Under the pieces are notes generated by a model. That model did not search any database. It saw only the letters and a program-made list of their open reading frames with translations, and was not told the DNA's origin. Source: Macrostomum lignano (taxonomy: Eukaryota). From it: a stretch of 64,000 nt of DNA. The stretch covers positions 1 through 64,000 of the forward strand of contig NIVC01000013.1 of assembly GCA_002269645.1 (NCBI GenBank), read 5' to 3'. Below, one piece after another: positions 45,209 through 51,200 of this stretch (position 1 is the first letter of the stretch; each line of letters begins with the position of its first letter). A program made the position numbers and the translations under genes.

Positions 45209-48200
45209 ATGCCGCCAGCATCGCTACACCATCAACTCCTAATTTGGTTGCTACTAGCAACCGCCAGATCAGTTCAAACCGATCCACTCAGACTGCAGCT
45301 CAACGTTAGGGAGACTTCGGATGAATCGAACTCGCGACTGCCGATCGACATCGAAAATCTGTCGACCCGATTGACACAGCTGAACCGGCTGCCTCAGTGG
45401 TCCGCCATCTCCTACAATTTGATCGTCAGGAAGCCCCCGATGGCGGCCAGAAGTCTGTCGCTGGACAGGTCAACAGGTGAACTGCGGTTGGTGTCTCAGC
45501 TGAGACGCGAACTGCTGTGCCCTCCGTCTATCTCGACGCTGGCTTGTTCCGACTCGGACCCGGCCGACTCGTGCCAGATATCCGGCCTGGTCCAGATCAG
45601 GGATTCGGACAACCCGGCCGAGCTGCTCATTCTAGAGCTGCTGATCGATGTGCTCGACATTGATAATTCGCCGCCGAAATTTGACCGGTCTCTTTCCGAG
45701 GCTGAGATCTGGGAGAATAGTCCTCTGGGCCACGCCATACCGCTGCCGCGAGCTGTGGACTTGGATCAGGGCGGCCACGCCACCTGCCAACTGGTCTACA
45801 GCTTGACGCCGTGTTCACCGGGCGATCCGGCATACGACAAGACATTTTCGCTGGTCAGGAAGCAGTCTTCCACCGCCTCATTCGTGGGACCTCCTGAATA
45901 TGAGCTGCAGCTGATGCGCCATCTGGACAAGGAGACCGTGTCCCGCTACCGGTTCTGCATCGCTGCGTCCAGCAGACTTGGCGGTGCAACGGCCACTGCA
46001 ACCCTGACCGTGCGGGTGCACGATCACAACGACAACTCGCCAGTCTGGTCGCCTAGTCAGGTCTTTGTCGTGAACGTGTCCGAGGCCAACCCGCCAGCTC
46101 TGCTGCTGCGACTCTCGGCCACTGACGCCGACAGCGACTTCGGCCTGGTGCACTACCGGCTGCTCCGAGACGACCCGCTGTTCGCCGTCAACTCTATCGG
46201 CGAGGTCACTTTGAGACGCGTCAACGGACTTGACTACGAGACCGCTAGCCAGCACTTGCTGCTGGTTGCGGCCATAGACAATGGCAAGCCGGCCTTCAGC
46301 GTCACCGCCACAGTCACCGTCAACGTGCTAGACGCCAATGACAACCGTCCGAGAATCAATCTGGACAATCAGTACAAATCCGTCATTGAAAATAACCCGG
46401 TGCCTTTGTTCATCCACACCCTGGACGTCTCCGATCGGGATCCCGGACTCAACGGGGCGGTCACCTGCCAGGTTGGACCATCCGAGCTGCGACAAGTTTT
46501 CTACCTGGAGGTCAAGCTGAACAATAGGGATAATAAAATCTACAATTTGTACGCTAATAGATCGTTTGATCGCGAACTAATCAGCCAGTACACCGTGTCG
46601 ATTGAGTGCACACTCTTCCCCTGAAGTAGGATATTGGTCCATGAAATATACCAAGAAAGCGGTTTGTTTCCCATGGATCAGTGTCCTTATAGTAGCCTAA
46701 AACAATGTTCACTGAAATCATATCGCATTGTCTGTACACCGTACAGGTATATTAATTAGTCCAGTACTAGCTGGCTGTTATAGTTAGTATTTACTTCACA
46801 CTAGGGCCTCTGAATTGAATATTTATAGTAAAATTCAGACATGGATATGCAGTTAAATACTTCAATAGATTCAATCCATTCGCACCTGCATATATCAACA
46901 TTTGCACCTGTGTAATAACTACCTTTATATGCACCTTGACACCTTTAATTTTTTTACCGTAAGTACTGCGAAAAAATCCATATAATAGATGAGCAAGGGG
47001 TAAAAACTATATATTCTACAGCTGTCACTTCAAAAAGCTAAAAGCACAACAGACTTTGTTTGTCAATCAAGATTTTCAAGCCTTGTCAGTGGTAGGCTTA
47101 TGAGAAGGGAAATTTTAAATCGATCTCTTCCATAGACATTTGATTTTGTTTCACAAGTTTTTGTTGGTATGTACACTGGTGTTGAGGGTTTGGCCATAGA
47201 CAAAAGTCTTGAGGAGATGAGCTGACTGTCAGTGTGAAATTTATGCCTTTATATTTTTTGGCTTTCATTGCTTCTCAAAATGCCTAACAGTAGGCGAACA
47301 CACGAAGAAAGTCGAAACAGTGTGTGCATTTTATGCTTTCGCAAGGGTGACCGACAATTGACTGTAAGTCTGGAAGCCTTAATCGAGTGCTATGTCCTGC
47401 CTGGATTTGCTCAACACCGAGCATTTCTGCCGTCAGGTATCTGCAACTCCTGCCGGATCAAGTTGTCATCGCAGAACAGTGCAGCACCAGCACCTCTTCC
47501 GCCTCGCTTGCCATACGAAAAAGTAATAGATGATCTGCACTACCTTCCACCACTCACTCGTGAACGTCCTGAGTGCAGCTGCTGGATCTGCAATGTCGCC
47601 TCCAGCAGGGCTAACAAGAACGTGAATGTAGCGCACCCCTACATGTCAGAGGAGTTCAATTCAGGGGTAGCAACTCCACTTGGCCGTCCTCTGAACTGTG
47701 CACCTGGATCCGTGAAAGACAGCGTCAAACATTGCGGCACATGCTCGTCACCAGTGGCGCGGGGAGTGCGACATGAATGCGGACAAGCCGCGAAGCTGCG
47801 CTACCTCAGCACCTTGAGTCCAAGTTCAATGGAGCATGTAGCCTGCAGTTTTCTCCGCGAAAAACTAAACGCAGCAGACGTGTCTTCTTCCGGAGATGCT
47901 GCAACAGCTAGTCTGTCTTCTGGTTTCGGTGGGCATCCAATCCAAGTCCAAGCTGTTGACACATCAACCAGCCATGTCCCACAAATGTTGCACAGCACAA
48001 TGAGGGCCATGAAAACTGCCTTGAACCTAAGCACCAACCAGACCATTCAAGCTGCGCAAGTGATAAGAGAGGCGTCTGGCAACAGAAAAGCAATTCAACC
48101 TGGATTGAAGGAGTTCCTGTTTTCTGAAGGCCAGAGTGTCGCTCATTTCTTTGCTGTGGAGCAGCTCCAGTTCATCTGCAAGCAACCATCTGGGCAAGTA

Positions 48201-51200
48201 ATTTCAATTGATCGTTCAGCTGTGTTCTGTTGCAATGTGAGTGAGTTCTTGGCTTATGTTTGCAGTTTGAGAGGCATGGCTGAGATGGAACATCATCTCA
48301 AGCTTGGAATTGATGGTGGAGGGAATTCATTGAAGATTTGCATCAGCGTTACTGATAGTGATGGGCTCCCGGCGCAAGCTTCAATGCCTGGGCCATCCAA
48401 TAGATTTCTCAACTCGGGGGTTAAAAAGCTTTTCGTCCTGGCCATTGTAGAGGATGTCAAAGAGTGTTACGAGAATGTCAAAACTCTATTATCCACCATG
48501 GACATCAGTTCCTTCCTATTCACTTTGGCCTGTGACTTCAAGCTAGCCAACATCATCTGTGGCATTCAAAGCCATGCTTCGACGCATCCTTGCCTTTACT
48601 GCGAGGGCAAGTCTCCATGGACCACTCCAGCACCAAGCAGAACACTTGGCTCAGTGAGGCGGCTGGCAAACGAGTTTCAGTTGGCCGGCGGACATCAGCC
48701 TGCTGCCAAACACTTTGCCAACTGTGTTCAGTCTCCACTGCTGCCTGGACTGGATTCCACTGAACTGATTGAGTTGGTGCCACCACCTGAGCTGCACATT
48801 ATGCTTGGCATTGTGAACCGTTTGCTGGATGAGCTCAACAACCGATGGGGCAATGATATGGCCTACAAGTGGGCCCATGGAGCAGGGATCTGTCGTCAGC
48901 AGTATCATGGAGGTTGCTTGGAAGGTCCAGCATGCAAGAAGCTGCTTCTAAAGGCTGGCGAGCTATGGAACATTTTACCTGCGCACCTGAAAATGTTTGC
49001 CGTTGCACTTCAGGATTTCAATGCAATTCGGCTAGCCTGCTTTGGCCAAACTCTTGCCAATGACTTTGCTTTGCATATTGCTCGATTTCAGACGACATGC
49101 CAGTTCCTCCAGCTAAATGTGACACCCAAGATGCATGCACTATTCCACCATGTGCCAACATTCTGTTCAAAGTCTGGCAAGGCATTGGGGAGCTTTAGTG
49201 AGCAGACAGTGGAGTCAGCTCACAGTGATTTCGAGGCCACCTGGCAAAGATATCGGCGCCCTTTCAATCATCCACAGTATGCCGCAAACCTTCTTCAGGC
49301 TGTTGTGAACTATAATTCGTTTCATATTTGAACTTCTAACGTTATGGTTTGATCAACTGGACATAAACTGACTGACCTTGCCTGATTTATTTGTTTCTTC
49401 AATAGTGAGTTGCTAGTCTGTTTTAGTTGTATTGTATGGTTCTTTGTATTGTATTGTCTTTTGTATGGTTCTATTTCTGGTTTCTATTTCTAAACAATGT
49501 TCTATTCAGCAACATCTTTCGTATACATTCAGAATACAAGCAACTTTTTAGACTTACTTATTATATCACTTTCAATCACTGTGGATTTTTTCGCAGTACT
49601 TACGGTAGAAAAAATTAAAGGTGTCAAGGTGCATATAAAGGTAGTTATTACACAGGTGCAAGTGTTGATATATGCAGGTGCAAATGGATTGAATCTATTG
49701 AAGTATTTAACTGCATATCCATGTCTGAATTTTACTATAAATATTCAATTCAGAGGCCCTAGTGTGAAGTAAATACTAACTATAACAGCCAGCTAGTACT
49801 GGACTAATTAATATACCTATACGGTGTACAGACAATGCGATAGGATTTCAGTGAACATTGTTTTAGGCTACTATAAGGACACTGATCCATGGGAAACAAA
49901 CTGCTTTCTTGGTATATTTCATGGACCAATATCCTACTTCAGGGGAAGAGTGTGCAGCGACGCTGGCACGCCGTCGCTCAGCAGTTCCGCTACAGTCTAC
50001 GTCAGCATCCAGGATGAGAACGACAATCCGCCGGCCTTTCCAGTCTCGCCCATCGACATCAGCTTTCTAGAGAGTGTGGCTCGGGACAGTCAGGTCTACA
50101 AGGTAAGTTGCTGGTTTGTGTCTCGCCGCACTTACATGAACCAGCCTCAACTAGCACCCACCACCCCATCACTGTACACACTGGCCATAAACTATAGCCC
50201 CAACTAGCACCCACCACCCCAACAATCTACACACTGGCCATAAACTATAGCCCCAACTAGCACCCACCACCCCAACAATCTACACACTGGCCATAAACTA
50301 TAGCCCCAACTAGCACCCACCACCCCAACAATCTACACACTGGCCATAAACTATAGCCCCAACTAGCACCCACCACCCCAACAATCTACACACTGGCCAT
50401 AAACTATAGCCCCAACTAGCACCCACCACCCCAACAATCTACACACTGGCCATAAACTATAGCCCCAACTTGCACCCACCACCCCAACAATCTACACACT
50501 GGCCATAAACTATAGCCCCAACTAGCACCCACCACCCCAACAATCTACACACTGACCAAAAACCATAGCCCCATATAGCACCCACCACCCCATCAGTGTA
50601 CACACTGACCATAAACTATAGCCCCAACTAGCACCCACCACCCCATCAGTGTACACACTGACCATAAACTATAGCCCCAACTAGCACCCACCACCCCATC
50701 AGTGTACACACTGACCATAAACTATAGTCCCAACTAGCACCCACCACCCCATCAGTGTACACACTGGCCATCATCCAAAACGCCTTCCCGCAGCTCAAAA
50801 TAATCGACCCAGACTTGGACAGATTCGGCTCGTCAAGGCAACGCGAATTCGTACTGACAGGGGACGGCGCCGAGAATTTCCGGGTGGTGAATCAAGGAGG
50901 CTTCCCTAGCGACTCTGGCAGTTTTCATTACTCTTTGACCACTACGAAAGATTTTGACAGGGAAACTCGCGACTTCTATCGCTTCAATATTACGGTAATC
51001 GACTGGATCGACAGCCCATCCATGCATAGCAACAGCGATGCTCCCTCTACAACAGTGGAACCACCAAAGCATCACCGAGCCACCGTTGAAGTCTCGGCAA
51101 GAATTCTAGACGTGAACGACTGCTCACCTGAGTTCAATCATACTGGCCCGTTAATCTTCGAAGTATTCGAAAATGCTAGCGTTGGTAGTGCGATCGGGGC

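Follow-up and report, generated by a model that had tools for sequence, protein, structure and literature searches.

Our preferred reading, to which we assign a probability of about 0.88, is that a Chapaev-group transposon was inserted into codon 468, in exon 1, of the Macrostomum lignano gene Mlig007419g2 after the three near-identical copies of this gene in the genome (g1, g2 and g3) had diverged, and that g1 and g3 are intact. The window analysed here comprises the first 64 kb (64,000 nucleotides) of contig NIVC01000013.1 of assembly Mlig_3_7, which represents the inbred line DV1. A preliminary description of the window had placed a transposon inside a protocadherin exon, and the split exon and both junctions were found as described there.

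The inserted element and the interrupted exon

The transposon is 3,342 bp long, autonomous, and occupies positions 46611-49952 of the plus strand, with the termini 5'-CACTCTTCCCCTGAAG...CTTCAGGGGAAGAGTG-3'. It is flanked by two copies of the 4-bp target site duplication TGCA, the left one at 46607-46610 and the right one at 49953-49956, thus the previously delimited span 46607-49956 consists of the element proper plus both TGCA copies. The left junction reads ...ATTGAGTGCA|CACTCTTCC and the right junction ...GGAAGAGTG|TGCAGCGACGC; their support is the assembly consensus together with their canonical form. The element between the TGCA copies is intact, as described earlier, with complete inverted ends and an uninterrupted 683-aa reading frame.

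The 5' terminal inverted repeat extends from 46611 to 46980 (plus strand) and the 3' repeat from 49582 to 49952 (minus strand). With the palindromic TGCA included, the two arms match over 348 nt with 99% identity, and with the TGCA omitted over 344 ungapped nt with 5 mismatches, which can be extended to about 370 nt with one gap (98.4% identity). The outer approximately 160 nt of the repeat are conserved in a sister family. Three direct copies of AT(T/A)(C/T)GCACCT at 46878-46936 (plus strand), spaced by 22 and 27 nt and mirrored in the 3' arm, are candidate transposase-binding sites. The 27-nt terminal sequence occurs in the window only at the two ends of the element (0 occurrences expected by chance). 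The list of open reading frames of the window contains one ORF for the element, an intronless frame of 683 aa plus stop codon at 47280-49331 (plus strand), which was identified as the transposase by alignment and predicted structure; the identical protein is found at 47280-49331 of the record NIVC01000013.1.

The host gene is encoded by six exons of the plus strand. Exon 1 is divided by the element into a proximal part (45209-46610) carrying the start codon, the signal peptide, cadherin repeats 1-3 and about three quarters of repeat 4, and a distal part (49957-50102) carrying the end of repeat 4 and the start of repeat 5, and ending with the donor AAG|GTAAGT. Exon 2 (50794-51800) encodes cadherin repeats 5-6 and the membrane-proximal region, exon 3 (52244-52677) the transmembrane segment GIVIAALVVASVILAAVLILAVVLL, exons 4 (58678-58907) and 5 (61388-61484) the cytoplasmic tail, and exon 6 (62191-62450) the C-terminus ...TVSFV* with the stop codon. 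A tandem-repeat array is present in every intron of the gene. In agreement with the earlier statement that the downstream exons are open and their splice sites intact, the introns have GT/AG sites and the six-exon model corresponds to the deposited 1,191-aa protein: removal of the element and one TGCA yields PAA94154.1 exactly. Joining 46610 to 49957 gives ...YTVSIECSDAGTPSLSSSATVYVSIQDENDNPPAF, which aligns without gaps across the junction with a mollusc protocadherin. In the joined sequence repeat 4 scores 48.6 bits against Pfam Cadherin (profile positions 4-93 of 93), compared with 29.4 bits (4-74 of 93) in the interrupted one. Excision with one TGCA would thus restore cadherin repeat 4, as had been predicted.

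The host protein has the features expected of a protocadherin, namely a signal peptide, six or more cadherin repeats, one transmembrane helix and no classical catenin-binding tail (a Pfam search of the protein found no match to Cadherin_C). It matches Pfam Cadherin (8.6e-62) in five stretches, and a Cadherin_2-like match near the N-terminus, slightly below threshold (22.4 bits, cut-off 23), is taken as the sixth repeat. The signal peptide, the six repeats, the single transmembrane helix and a cytoplasmic tail free of a catenin-binding domain are shared with delta-type (non-clustered) protocadherins such as protocadherin-9 and protocadherin-11X. Protocadherins are also the best matches in database searches (26-32% identity), but the cytoplasmic tail is unrelated to those of the vertebrate proteins, and the likeness falls short of an established orthology.

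Assignment to the Chapaev group

Chapaev transposons are characterized by 3-4 bp target duplications and by the transposase motifs C(2)C, LH and H(4)H (PMC4079192). All eight copies examined are flanked by perfect 4-bp duplications (TGCA, CAAT, TAGT, ACTT, GCTA and TGCA in the family of the window element, GTCA and CAGT in the sister family), and two paralogous empty sites contain a single TGCA. The termini have the form CAC...GTG, with CACTCTTCC...GGAAGAGTG in this element and CACGCCTCC...GGAGGCGTG in the sister family. The DDE core of the transposase is formed by D345, D419 and E645 (or E641), and the motifs C438-x2-C441, L505-H506 and H619-x4-H624 are present, the C(2)C and H(4)H motifs making up the zinc site of this RAG1/Transib-like core; among 12 homologs the residues D345, D419, C438/C441, LH505-506, H619/H624 and E641/E645 are invariant or nearly so. 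At the N-terminus (about residues 7-105) there is a CHAPA-type zinc finger, in which HEESRNSVCILCFRKGDRQLT...ICNSCR...PLTRERPECSCWIC can be aligned with the CHAPA domains listed in Additional file 5 of PMC4411706.

Homology to named Chapaev transposases was found both in the catalytic core and in the CHAPA zinc finger. The core matches the Chapaev3 transposase Garfield_BM with an hhalign probability of 98.9% (E 1.2e-17, 354 columns), and BLASTP gave 1e-13 for the same protein. The N-terminus aligned with Chapaev-2_HM with a score of 109 (z 19.6), the best of 300 shuffles reaching 46; the z values for Chapaev-1_AA, Chapaev-1_HM and Chapaev-1_BF were 9.1, 7.2 and 6.3, respectively, and similarity to the Chapaev3 CHAPA and human RAG1 rows was not significant. 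In these comparisons Garfield_BM served as the one full Chapaev3 protein and the other references were N-terminal fragments, taken from the Repbase entries in that same Additional file 5. The name Chapaev, given to the element in the preliminary description, is thus well founded in duplication length, termini, motifs and homology.

The Repbase Chapaev elements (Chapaev-2_HM of Hydra and Chapaev-1_AA of Aedes; Kapitonov and Jurka 2007) share with the M. lignano element the 4-bp duplication, the CAC...GTG termini, the zinc finger spacing H-x7-C-x2-C ... C-x2-C ... C-x-C-x2-C and the C(2)C, LH, H(4)H core. In contrast to them, the M. lignano element represents a new flatworm family (the references being compared by their N-terminal parts), has very long inverted repeats (344-370 nt), and in the Pfam search of its transposase no RING finger was detected after the CHAPA domain. 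The catalytic core of Garfield_BM (Bombyx mori, PMC4079192) is homologous, with D, C(2)C, LH, H(4)H and E aligned, but core identity is only about 20-23% and the N-terminus has no significant CHAPA similarity to Chapaev3. Whereas Chapaev3 elements duplicate the 3-bp sequence TWA (PMC4079192), the M. lignano element duplicates 4 bp without a clear consensus.

The predicted fold of the transposase (AlphaFold2 model, mean pLDDT 76.6, about 80-89 for residues 10-90) points in the direction of RAG1. In a Foldseek search of the PDB, 22 of 22 matches with E <= 1e-3 were RAG1, amphioxus RAG1-like protein or Helicoverpa Transib (best E 1.7e-12). The similarity to RAG1, ProtoRAG RAG1-like and Transib structures (4wwx, 6b40 and 6pqn, among others) extends over about 520-570 columns, with E values between 1.7e-12 and 1e-4 and TM scores of about 0.45-0.5; catalytic and zinc residues follow one another in the same order, and a weak alignment of the C(2)C and H(4)H segments is seen even in sequence. 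To our knowledge the PDB holds no Chapaev structure, and RAG1 and Transib are therefore simply the nearest solved relatives that such a search can return.

Three observations could speak for another superfamily (Transib proper, CACTA/EnSpm or Mirage): the fold matches are confined to RAG1 and Transib structures, the termini begin with CACT as those of CACTA elements do, and no Pfam model names the transposase (no match at E <= 0.1). Target duplications are 5 bp in Transib, 3 bp in CACTA and 2 bp in Mirage, but here every one of the eight copies has 4 bp, and both empty sites agree. The termini do not resemble the RSS-like ends of Transib proper (CACAGTG-type heptamer plus AT-rich nonamer), only CAC being common to CACTCTTCCCCTGAAG, and the TnpD-type Transposase_21 domain of CACTA/EnSpm was not among Pfam matches at E <= 0.1. 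The RAG1-core fold, with its DDE residues and C2H2 zinc site, does appear in the model, but sequence similarity to a RAG1-like chain is marginal and not significant (E 0.22), in contrast to the strong similarity to named Chapaev proteins, and the single ORF leaves the element without the RAG2-like partner gene of RAG1 and ProtoRAG. Yuan and Wessler are said to put Chapaev in the CMC superfamily. Kapitonov and Koonin regard Chapaev as a clade of the Transib superfamily, and a RAG1-core fold fits a sister clade of Transib within that superfamily. Membership in a superfamily other than Chapaev is, on this evidence, highly improbable, and the Chapaev group is distant kin of the RAG1 recombinase.

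Age and authenticity of the insertion

The comparison with paralogous contigs proposed in the preliminary description revealed that both paralogs of the interrupted gene (P0227 at locus L009 and P0228 at L010) are intact at the insertion site. The element is absent from both, and they read ...GTGTCGATTGAG[TGCA]GCGACGCTGGC..., which is the exact empty site GAG[TGCA]GCG. The three copies are 98.7-98.9% identical in coding sequence, and this agrees with published work, according to which about 85% of Mlig_3_7 exists as three paralogous copies that differ by 1.1% in coding sequence (PMC10733133).

The element family comprises six full-length copies with unrelated flanks, which differ at 14 variable sites in 3,342 bp; the full-length copies are 99.79-99.94% identical to that in the window, and the five others share its architecture. 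The window copy has one private change and deviates from the family consensus at 1 of 3,342 positions. An identical 683-aa ORF is found on three contigs. Deletions of 1 nt in G-runs were seen in three of the six copies, and these may be real frameshifts or long-read errors. The count of near-identical copies bears out the earlier description of the element as young. The approximately 98% identity of the inverted repeats, cited there in support of youth, was confirmed as a figure; as a measure of age it failed, because the same 5 mismatches are common to all copies of what is a cut-and-paste element. Youth is shown instead by how little the copies differ from one another in the assembled sequences, which suggests that the family is still mobile or was mobile very recently.

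Taken together, the empty sites in both paralogs and the near-identical copies indicate that the insertion is much younger than the divergence of the three gene copies and is confined to one of them. The proposed confinement to one homeolog therefore stands within this assembly, with 'one homeolog' and 'one haplotype' being indistinguishable here since the literature is unsettled on whether such three-copy genes are homeologs or heterozygous variants of fused chromosomes.

An old, decaying pseudogene, whose downstream exons are open by chance, would show a premature stop, and beyond that stop nothing speaks for decay. All six exons have retained open frames and GT/AG sites, their 1,191-aa product aligns colinearly with those of both paralogs, and the private changes of the window lineage (14 synonymous, 4 non-synonymous) are no worse than those of the intact copies (12:8 and 18:7), so that in its coding sequence the interrupted copy shows normal purifying selection. 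With exons open and constrained, and an element at one position in 3,342 from its family consensus, the pseudogene is already contradicted, and we give it next to no credence. An assembly artefact, or a rare or somatic insertion carried by few of the pooled animals, has more in its favour, as this is a long-read assembly of a repeat-rich triplicated genome; 93% of read pairs have more than one mapping locus in it, and errors in copy number have been described (PMC10733133). Yet the termini are complete, the architecture is that of the five other copies, and the perfect 4-bp duplication is of a sequence present once in both paralogs; a chimeric join would not create such a duplication. We consider an artefact unlikely to a marked degree.

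Consequences for the host gene and implications

In the reading we prefer, a Chapaev-group element would have entered exon 1 in sense orientation, duplicating the 4-bp target TGCA; M. lignano is a neopolyploid flatworm, and its three paralogous genome copies would have diverged long before. If the transposase works as RAG1 and Transib do, it would nick at the CAC end, form a hairpin on the flanking DNA and integrate with a 4-nt stagger. As described earlier, translation in the host frame would continue into the element as far as a TGA at 46622-46624 (plus strand), yielding a 471-aa ORF that ends ...IECTLFP*. With this premature stop 12 nt into the element, the mRNA would more likely be degraded; at best a 471-aa fragment would be made, retaining the signal peptide and lacking a membrane anchor. 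The earlier proposal that the product is a secreted decoy, or that the transcript triggers NMD, is speculative. The interrupted copy is thus probably a loss-of-function allele, the loss of which the two intact paralogs would buffer.

The deposited gene model spans the element, and the GenBank protein PAA94154.1 (BOX15_Mlig007419g2) skips it silently. A model of this kind could hint at element-free transcripts, and is equally explained by mapped transcripts of the paralogs. It also lends something to the idea that the element acts as a new intron. The flanking G followed by the T of the left TGCA would supply the GT (46606-46607), the A of the right TGCA followed by the flanking G would supply the AG (49956-49957), and both dinucleotides, like the frame, can be read directly from the sequence. 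Splicing would remove the element and 10 nt, leaving an in-frame mRNA shorter by 6 nt, in which IECSDA would become IDDA and cadherin repeat 4 would lose 2 residues and keep its alternating cadherin motif. However, the deposited protein has IECSDAG and not IDDAG, thus the gene model does not use these sites; moreover, the five real donors of the gene all have A at +4 and G at +5, which the donor TGA|GTGCAC does not, and the acceptor follows a purine-rich stretch (GGGGAAGAGTGTGCAG) in place of a pyrimidine tract. Use of the element as an intron must be rated very unlikely; if true, a DNA transposon would have given rise to an intron, in real time, within a coding exon of an animal.

The interruption of Mlig007419g2 is a well-documented but ordinary transposon insertion, and current understanding is not overturned by it. 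It corrects the public annotation, in which PAA94154.1 is listed as an intact protein of 1,191 aa although its CDS jumps a 3.3-kb transposon without usable splice sites. One assembly contains the occupied site, its two unoccupied paralogous counterparts and near-identical copies elsewhere; these show that a Chapaev-group transposon moved after the recent multiplication of the M. lignano genome, and they provide a concrete case of three subgenomes diverging by transposon indels that knock out single gene copies.

We know of no Chapaev transposase that has been characterised so far. The M. lignano element is a candidate for studying how a RAG1/Transib relative makes 4-bp instead of 5-bp target cuts, and it offers an apparently intact Chapaev transposase with defined ends, possibly a native vector, in the only flatworm for which transgenesis is routine. 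Transposition of the family may be going on at present in the DV1 laboratory line; if so, this would be the first naturally active Chapaev (RAG1-related) element in an animal in which transgenesis is possible.

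Structure of the insertion and of the interrupted gene

The host frame, read from 45209, runs ...ATT GAG TGC A|CA CTC TTC CCC TGA and ends in the stop codon at 46622-46624, in agreement with the preliminary description of the junctions. A mechanical search found inverted arms of 348 nt at 46607-46954 and 49609-49956 (99% identity). Four bases of each arm belong to the target duplication, the palindrome TGCA, which leaves 46611-49952 (3,342 bp) as the element proper, with arms of 344 nt (5 mismatches) that reach ~370 nt with one gap. Within the window the 27-nt terminus has just two occurrences, one at each end of the element, the chance expectation being none. 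Three AT(T/A)(C/T)GCACCT repeats sit in the inner part of the arms. Between this family and a sister family described below, conservation extends over the outer ~160 nt of the arms but not over the inner halves. A single, intronless internal ORF (47280-49331) encodes 683 amino acids, and its product is 100% identical to the M. lignano protein at NIVC01000013.1 47280-49331, which identifies the window as bases 1-64000 of that contig (assembly GCA_002269645.1, inbred line DV1).

Joining position 46610 to 49957 yields the empty site ...YTVSIECSDAGTPSLSSSATVYVSIQDENDNPPAF. The joined product aligned without a gap over the junction with a mollusc protocadherin, and its fourth cadherin repeat scored 48.6 bits against the Pfam Cadherin profile (positions 4-93), compared with 29.4 bits (4-74) for the truncated form. 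Removal of the element with one TGCA thus restores repeat 4, as had been proposed.

The host gene consists of six exons: exon 1, split by the element (45209-46610 plus 49957-50102), exon 2 (50794-51800), exon 3 with the transmembrane helix (52244-52677), exon 4 (58678-58907), exon 5 (61388-61484) and exon 6 (62191-62450). To arrive at this model, the strongest splice acceptors and donors were set by eye, after which a search located the one missing exon of 97 nt; automated enumeration of exons toward 1,191 amino acids gave thousands of false solutions within tandem repeats. All exon boundaries are GT/AG, and the joined exons (3,576 nt) encode 1,191 amino acids, so the downstream exons are open and their splice sites intact, as described before. 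By exact look-up the product is PAA94154.1 (BOX15_Mlig007419g2, on the 1.385-Mb contig), which is precisely what deletion of the transposon and one TGCA from 45209-62450 would encode. The public annotation of this locus (g2) begins at 45209 and spans the element. The IECSDAG in the protein means that the deposited coding sequence has to skip the element and one TGCA (3,346 bp). No GT/AG pair allows this jump, and the gene model therefore conceals the disruption and presents a disrupted copy as intact.

In the g2 product there are a signal peptide, five Pfam-scored cadherin repeats and a transmembrane helix, and a catenin-binding domain is lacking. A Cadherin_2-like match below the threshold, in the N-terminal region, was counted as a putative sixth repeat. 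Its best relatives are protocadherins. When the repaired exon was used in a word-indexed protein search, only distant protocadherins came back and the three M. lignano proteins (g1, g2 and g3) were missed; as these are present in the same collection, the lack of close hits in that search is no evidence of absence.

Every intron of the host gene contains a tandem-repeat array (50143-50771, 51955-52200, 52681-52919, 54683-55775, 56277-56702, 57098-58640 and 58997-60192; units of 53, 29, 4, 13, 7, 5 and 21 bp, GAATA in up to 309 copies). Several of these arrays are open in multiple frames, creating long spurious ORFs on both strands, and their lengths vary among the three paralogous loci. Upstream of the cadherin gene, overlapping long ORFs on the minus strand (42752-44280) matched Pfam LRR_5 (BspA-type leucine-rich repeats, E 1.8e-11) and probably represent a neighbouring gene in opposite orientation. 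The next gene downstream at the two paralogous loci (L009:19067-20558 and L010:16408-17970) also lies on the opposite strand and encodes ~1,280 amino acids, with MIF4G/Upf2 domains in the L009 product; the window stops just where this gene would begin.

Family and fold of the transposase

The transposase ORF had no Pfam match, and comparison of its sequence with PDB and Pfam gave nothing usable. The best PDB sequence match, an OXA-type beta-lactamase (E 0.0088), was a chance pairing of ...KLANIL.GLQ.H... to ...KIANALIGLENH... and was discarded. In an alignment of 12 homologs the residues D345, D419, C438-x2-C441, E504-L505-H506, H619-x4-H624, E641/E645 and H648 were invariant or nearly so; they make up a DDE core that carries the C(2)C, LH and H(4)H motifs. 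Within the CMC group these motifs are diagnostic of Chapaev, as are a target duplication of 3-4 bp and CAC...GTG termini (PMC4079192). Profile comparison with the Chapaev3 reference transposase Garfield_BM, taken from the supplement of PMC4079192, gave a probability of 98.9% with E 1.2e-17 (354 columns) and lined up every motif; plain BLASTP gave 1e-13. The N-terminus (HEESRNSVCILCFRKGDRQLT...ICNSCR...PLTRERPECSCWIC) matches the CHAPA zinc-finger rows in the alignment of Kapitonov and Koonin. Scored against 300 shuffles for each reference, it gave z values of 19.6 with Hydra Chapaev-2_HM, 9.1 with Aedes Chapaev-1_AA, 7.2 with Chapaev-1_HM and 6.3 with Chapaev-1_BF; the scores with Chapaev3 and human RAG1 were not significant. 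These results and the 4-bp duplications bear out the Chapaev assignment. A library-wide profile search returned 10,087 representatives at E <= 1e-3, which indicates a large family.

The AlphaFold2 model of the transposase (mean pLDDT 76.6) had 22 PDB matches at E <= 1e-3, all of them RAG1, amphioxus RAG1-like or Helicoverpa Transib structures (best 1.7e-12), and the next structure followed at E 0.23. At the sequence level the RAG1-like match was marginal (E 0.22), yet the C(2)C and H(4)H segments were aligned. This combination would be expected under the proposal that places Chapaev as a deep sister clade to Transib and RAG1 (PMC4411706).

Empty sites, further copies and age of the insertion

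The 90% cluster of PAA94154.1 also holds the M. lignano proteins g1 (1,191 amino acids) and g3 (1,189 amino acids). Their loci, L009 and L010, had no match to the element. In alignments with the window the left flank extended to position 4402 and the right flank started from 4399, and both loci read ...GTGTCGATTGAG[TGCA]GCGACGCTGGC..., exactly the predicted empty site with a single TGCA. The same six exons taken from these loci translate exactly to the two deposited proteins. Thus, in this assembly one of three gene copies was hit, consistent with the earlier suggestion that the insertion is confined to one homeolog. Across the three copies the coding sequences share 98.7-98.9% identity at about equal distances from one another, which fits the published picture of Mlig_3_7, where ~85% of the assembly occurs three times, as paralogs that diverge by 1.1% in coding sequence and 2.2% overall and that differ from one another mostly by indels (PMC10733133). 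Private changes numbered 14 synonymous and 4 non-synonymous in the window lineage, and 12:8 and 18:7 in the other two; the interrupted copy must therefore have been under purifying selection for essentially all its separate history.

Besides the window copy, exact protein look-ups recovered five full-length copies (L001, L005, L006, L007 and L008), so that the count of six near-identical copies is a lower bound, and two copies of the sister family with 71% amino-acid identity (L002 and L003). Perfect 4-bp duplications flanked all eight copies examined (TGCA, CAAT, TAGT, ACTT, GCTA and TGCA in the window family, GTCA and CAGT in the sister family). An apparent 9-bp duplication at L001 (CAATACAAT on both sides) was rejected: the site lies within a CAATA microsatellite, and 4 bp are indicated by all other copies and by both empty sites. 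No two loci had flanks in common within 4 kb; the insertions are therefore independent, and none is shared between paralogous genome copies.

The sister family (5110-8881 in both L002 and L003) has a transposase of 679 amino acids, inverted repeats of 322 nt and the termini CACGCCTCCCCTGAAG, with at least seven protein variants annotated in the assembly. The L003 copy lies within a long tandem array: the sequences flanking this copy on the left and right (L003:5556-6996 and 8882-10900) can be aligned with one another (85-99% identity) in dozens of registers, spaced ~21 bp.

The six copies vary at 14 of 3,342 positions, and the window copy has one private change (49602), in keeping with its description as young and intact. 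The 683-aa protein is the same in three copies, among them the window's. In the remaining three the transposase frame is broken by 1-nt deletions in G-runs, in L001 at window-equivalent position 47761 and in L007 and L008 alike at 48416. Though at unrelated loci, L007 and L008 also have two substitutions in common. If the deletion is real, this suggests that a defective copy was mobilised in trans; otherwise it is a recurrent homopolymer error of long reads. Arm-to-arm identity was dropped as a dating tool, the same 5 mismatches being common to all copies and thus a family trait, not a clock. The element differs by 0.03% from the family consensus, against ~1-2% between the paralogs, which places the insertion late in that interval.

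Alternative explanations and consequences

Misassembly is an unlikely source of this structure, as a chimeric join would not duplicate four bases that are single in both paralogs. That the locus is an old pseudogene is contradicted by the near-identity of the element to its family (0.03% from the consensus), by the open exons and by the 14:4 ratio of private changes. Neither Transib proper nor CACTA fits the element, as both are at odds with its 4-bp target duplication and with its sequence similarities. A cryptic GT (46606-46607)...AG (49956-49957) pair, supplied by the flank and the duplicated TGCA, would splice the element out in frame with the loss of 6 coding nucleotides; however, its donor and acceptor lack what characterises the five genuine introns of this gene, the surrounding signals are weak, and the deposited protein does not use the pair.

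The window thus contains an intact autonomous element with family-typical ends and a precise 4-bp duplication, inserted in one of three gene copies. By analogy with RAG1 and Transib, the transposase would nick at the CAC end, form a hairpin on the flank and integrate with a 4-nt stagger, and the family is probably mobile now or was very recently. In g2 transcripts that read into the element, translation would terminate after four foreign codons, with five exon junctions lying far downstream of the stop; this would probably lead to decay or to a secreted 471-aa fragment of ~3.8 repeats, in which repeat 4 is missing its final strand and its calcium-binding linker. To look for signs that the interrupted transcript is expressed, public assemblies were searched for the truncated 471-aa product, without a match. 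Any phenotype is probably masked by the two intact paralogs.

We consider the finding real and the interpretation in the preliminary description largely correct. It represents a new family within a known transposon group, showing ordinary transposon behaviour in a repeat-rich, neopolyploid genome whose subgenomes diverge chiefly through such indels, each specific to one of them. What gives it value is that the internal evidence is unusually complete, that a public gene model (PAA94154.1) is exposed as misleading, and that a tractable animal has here a Chapaev element which is likely to be active.
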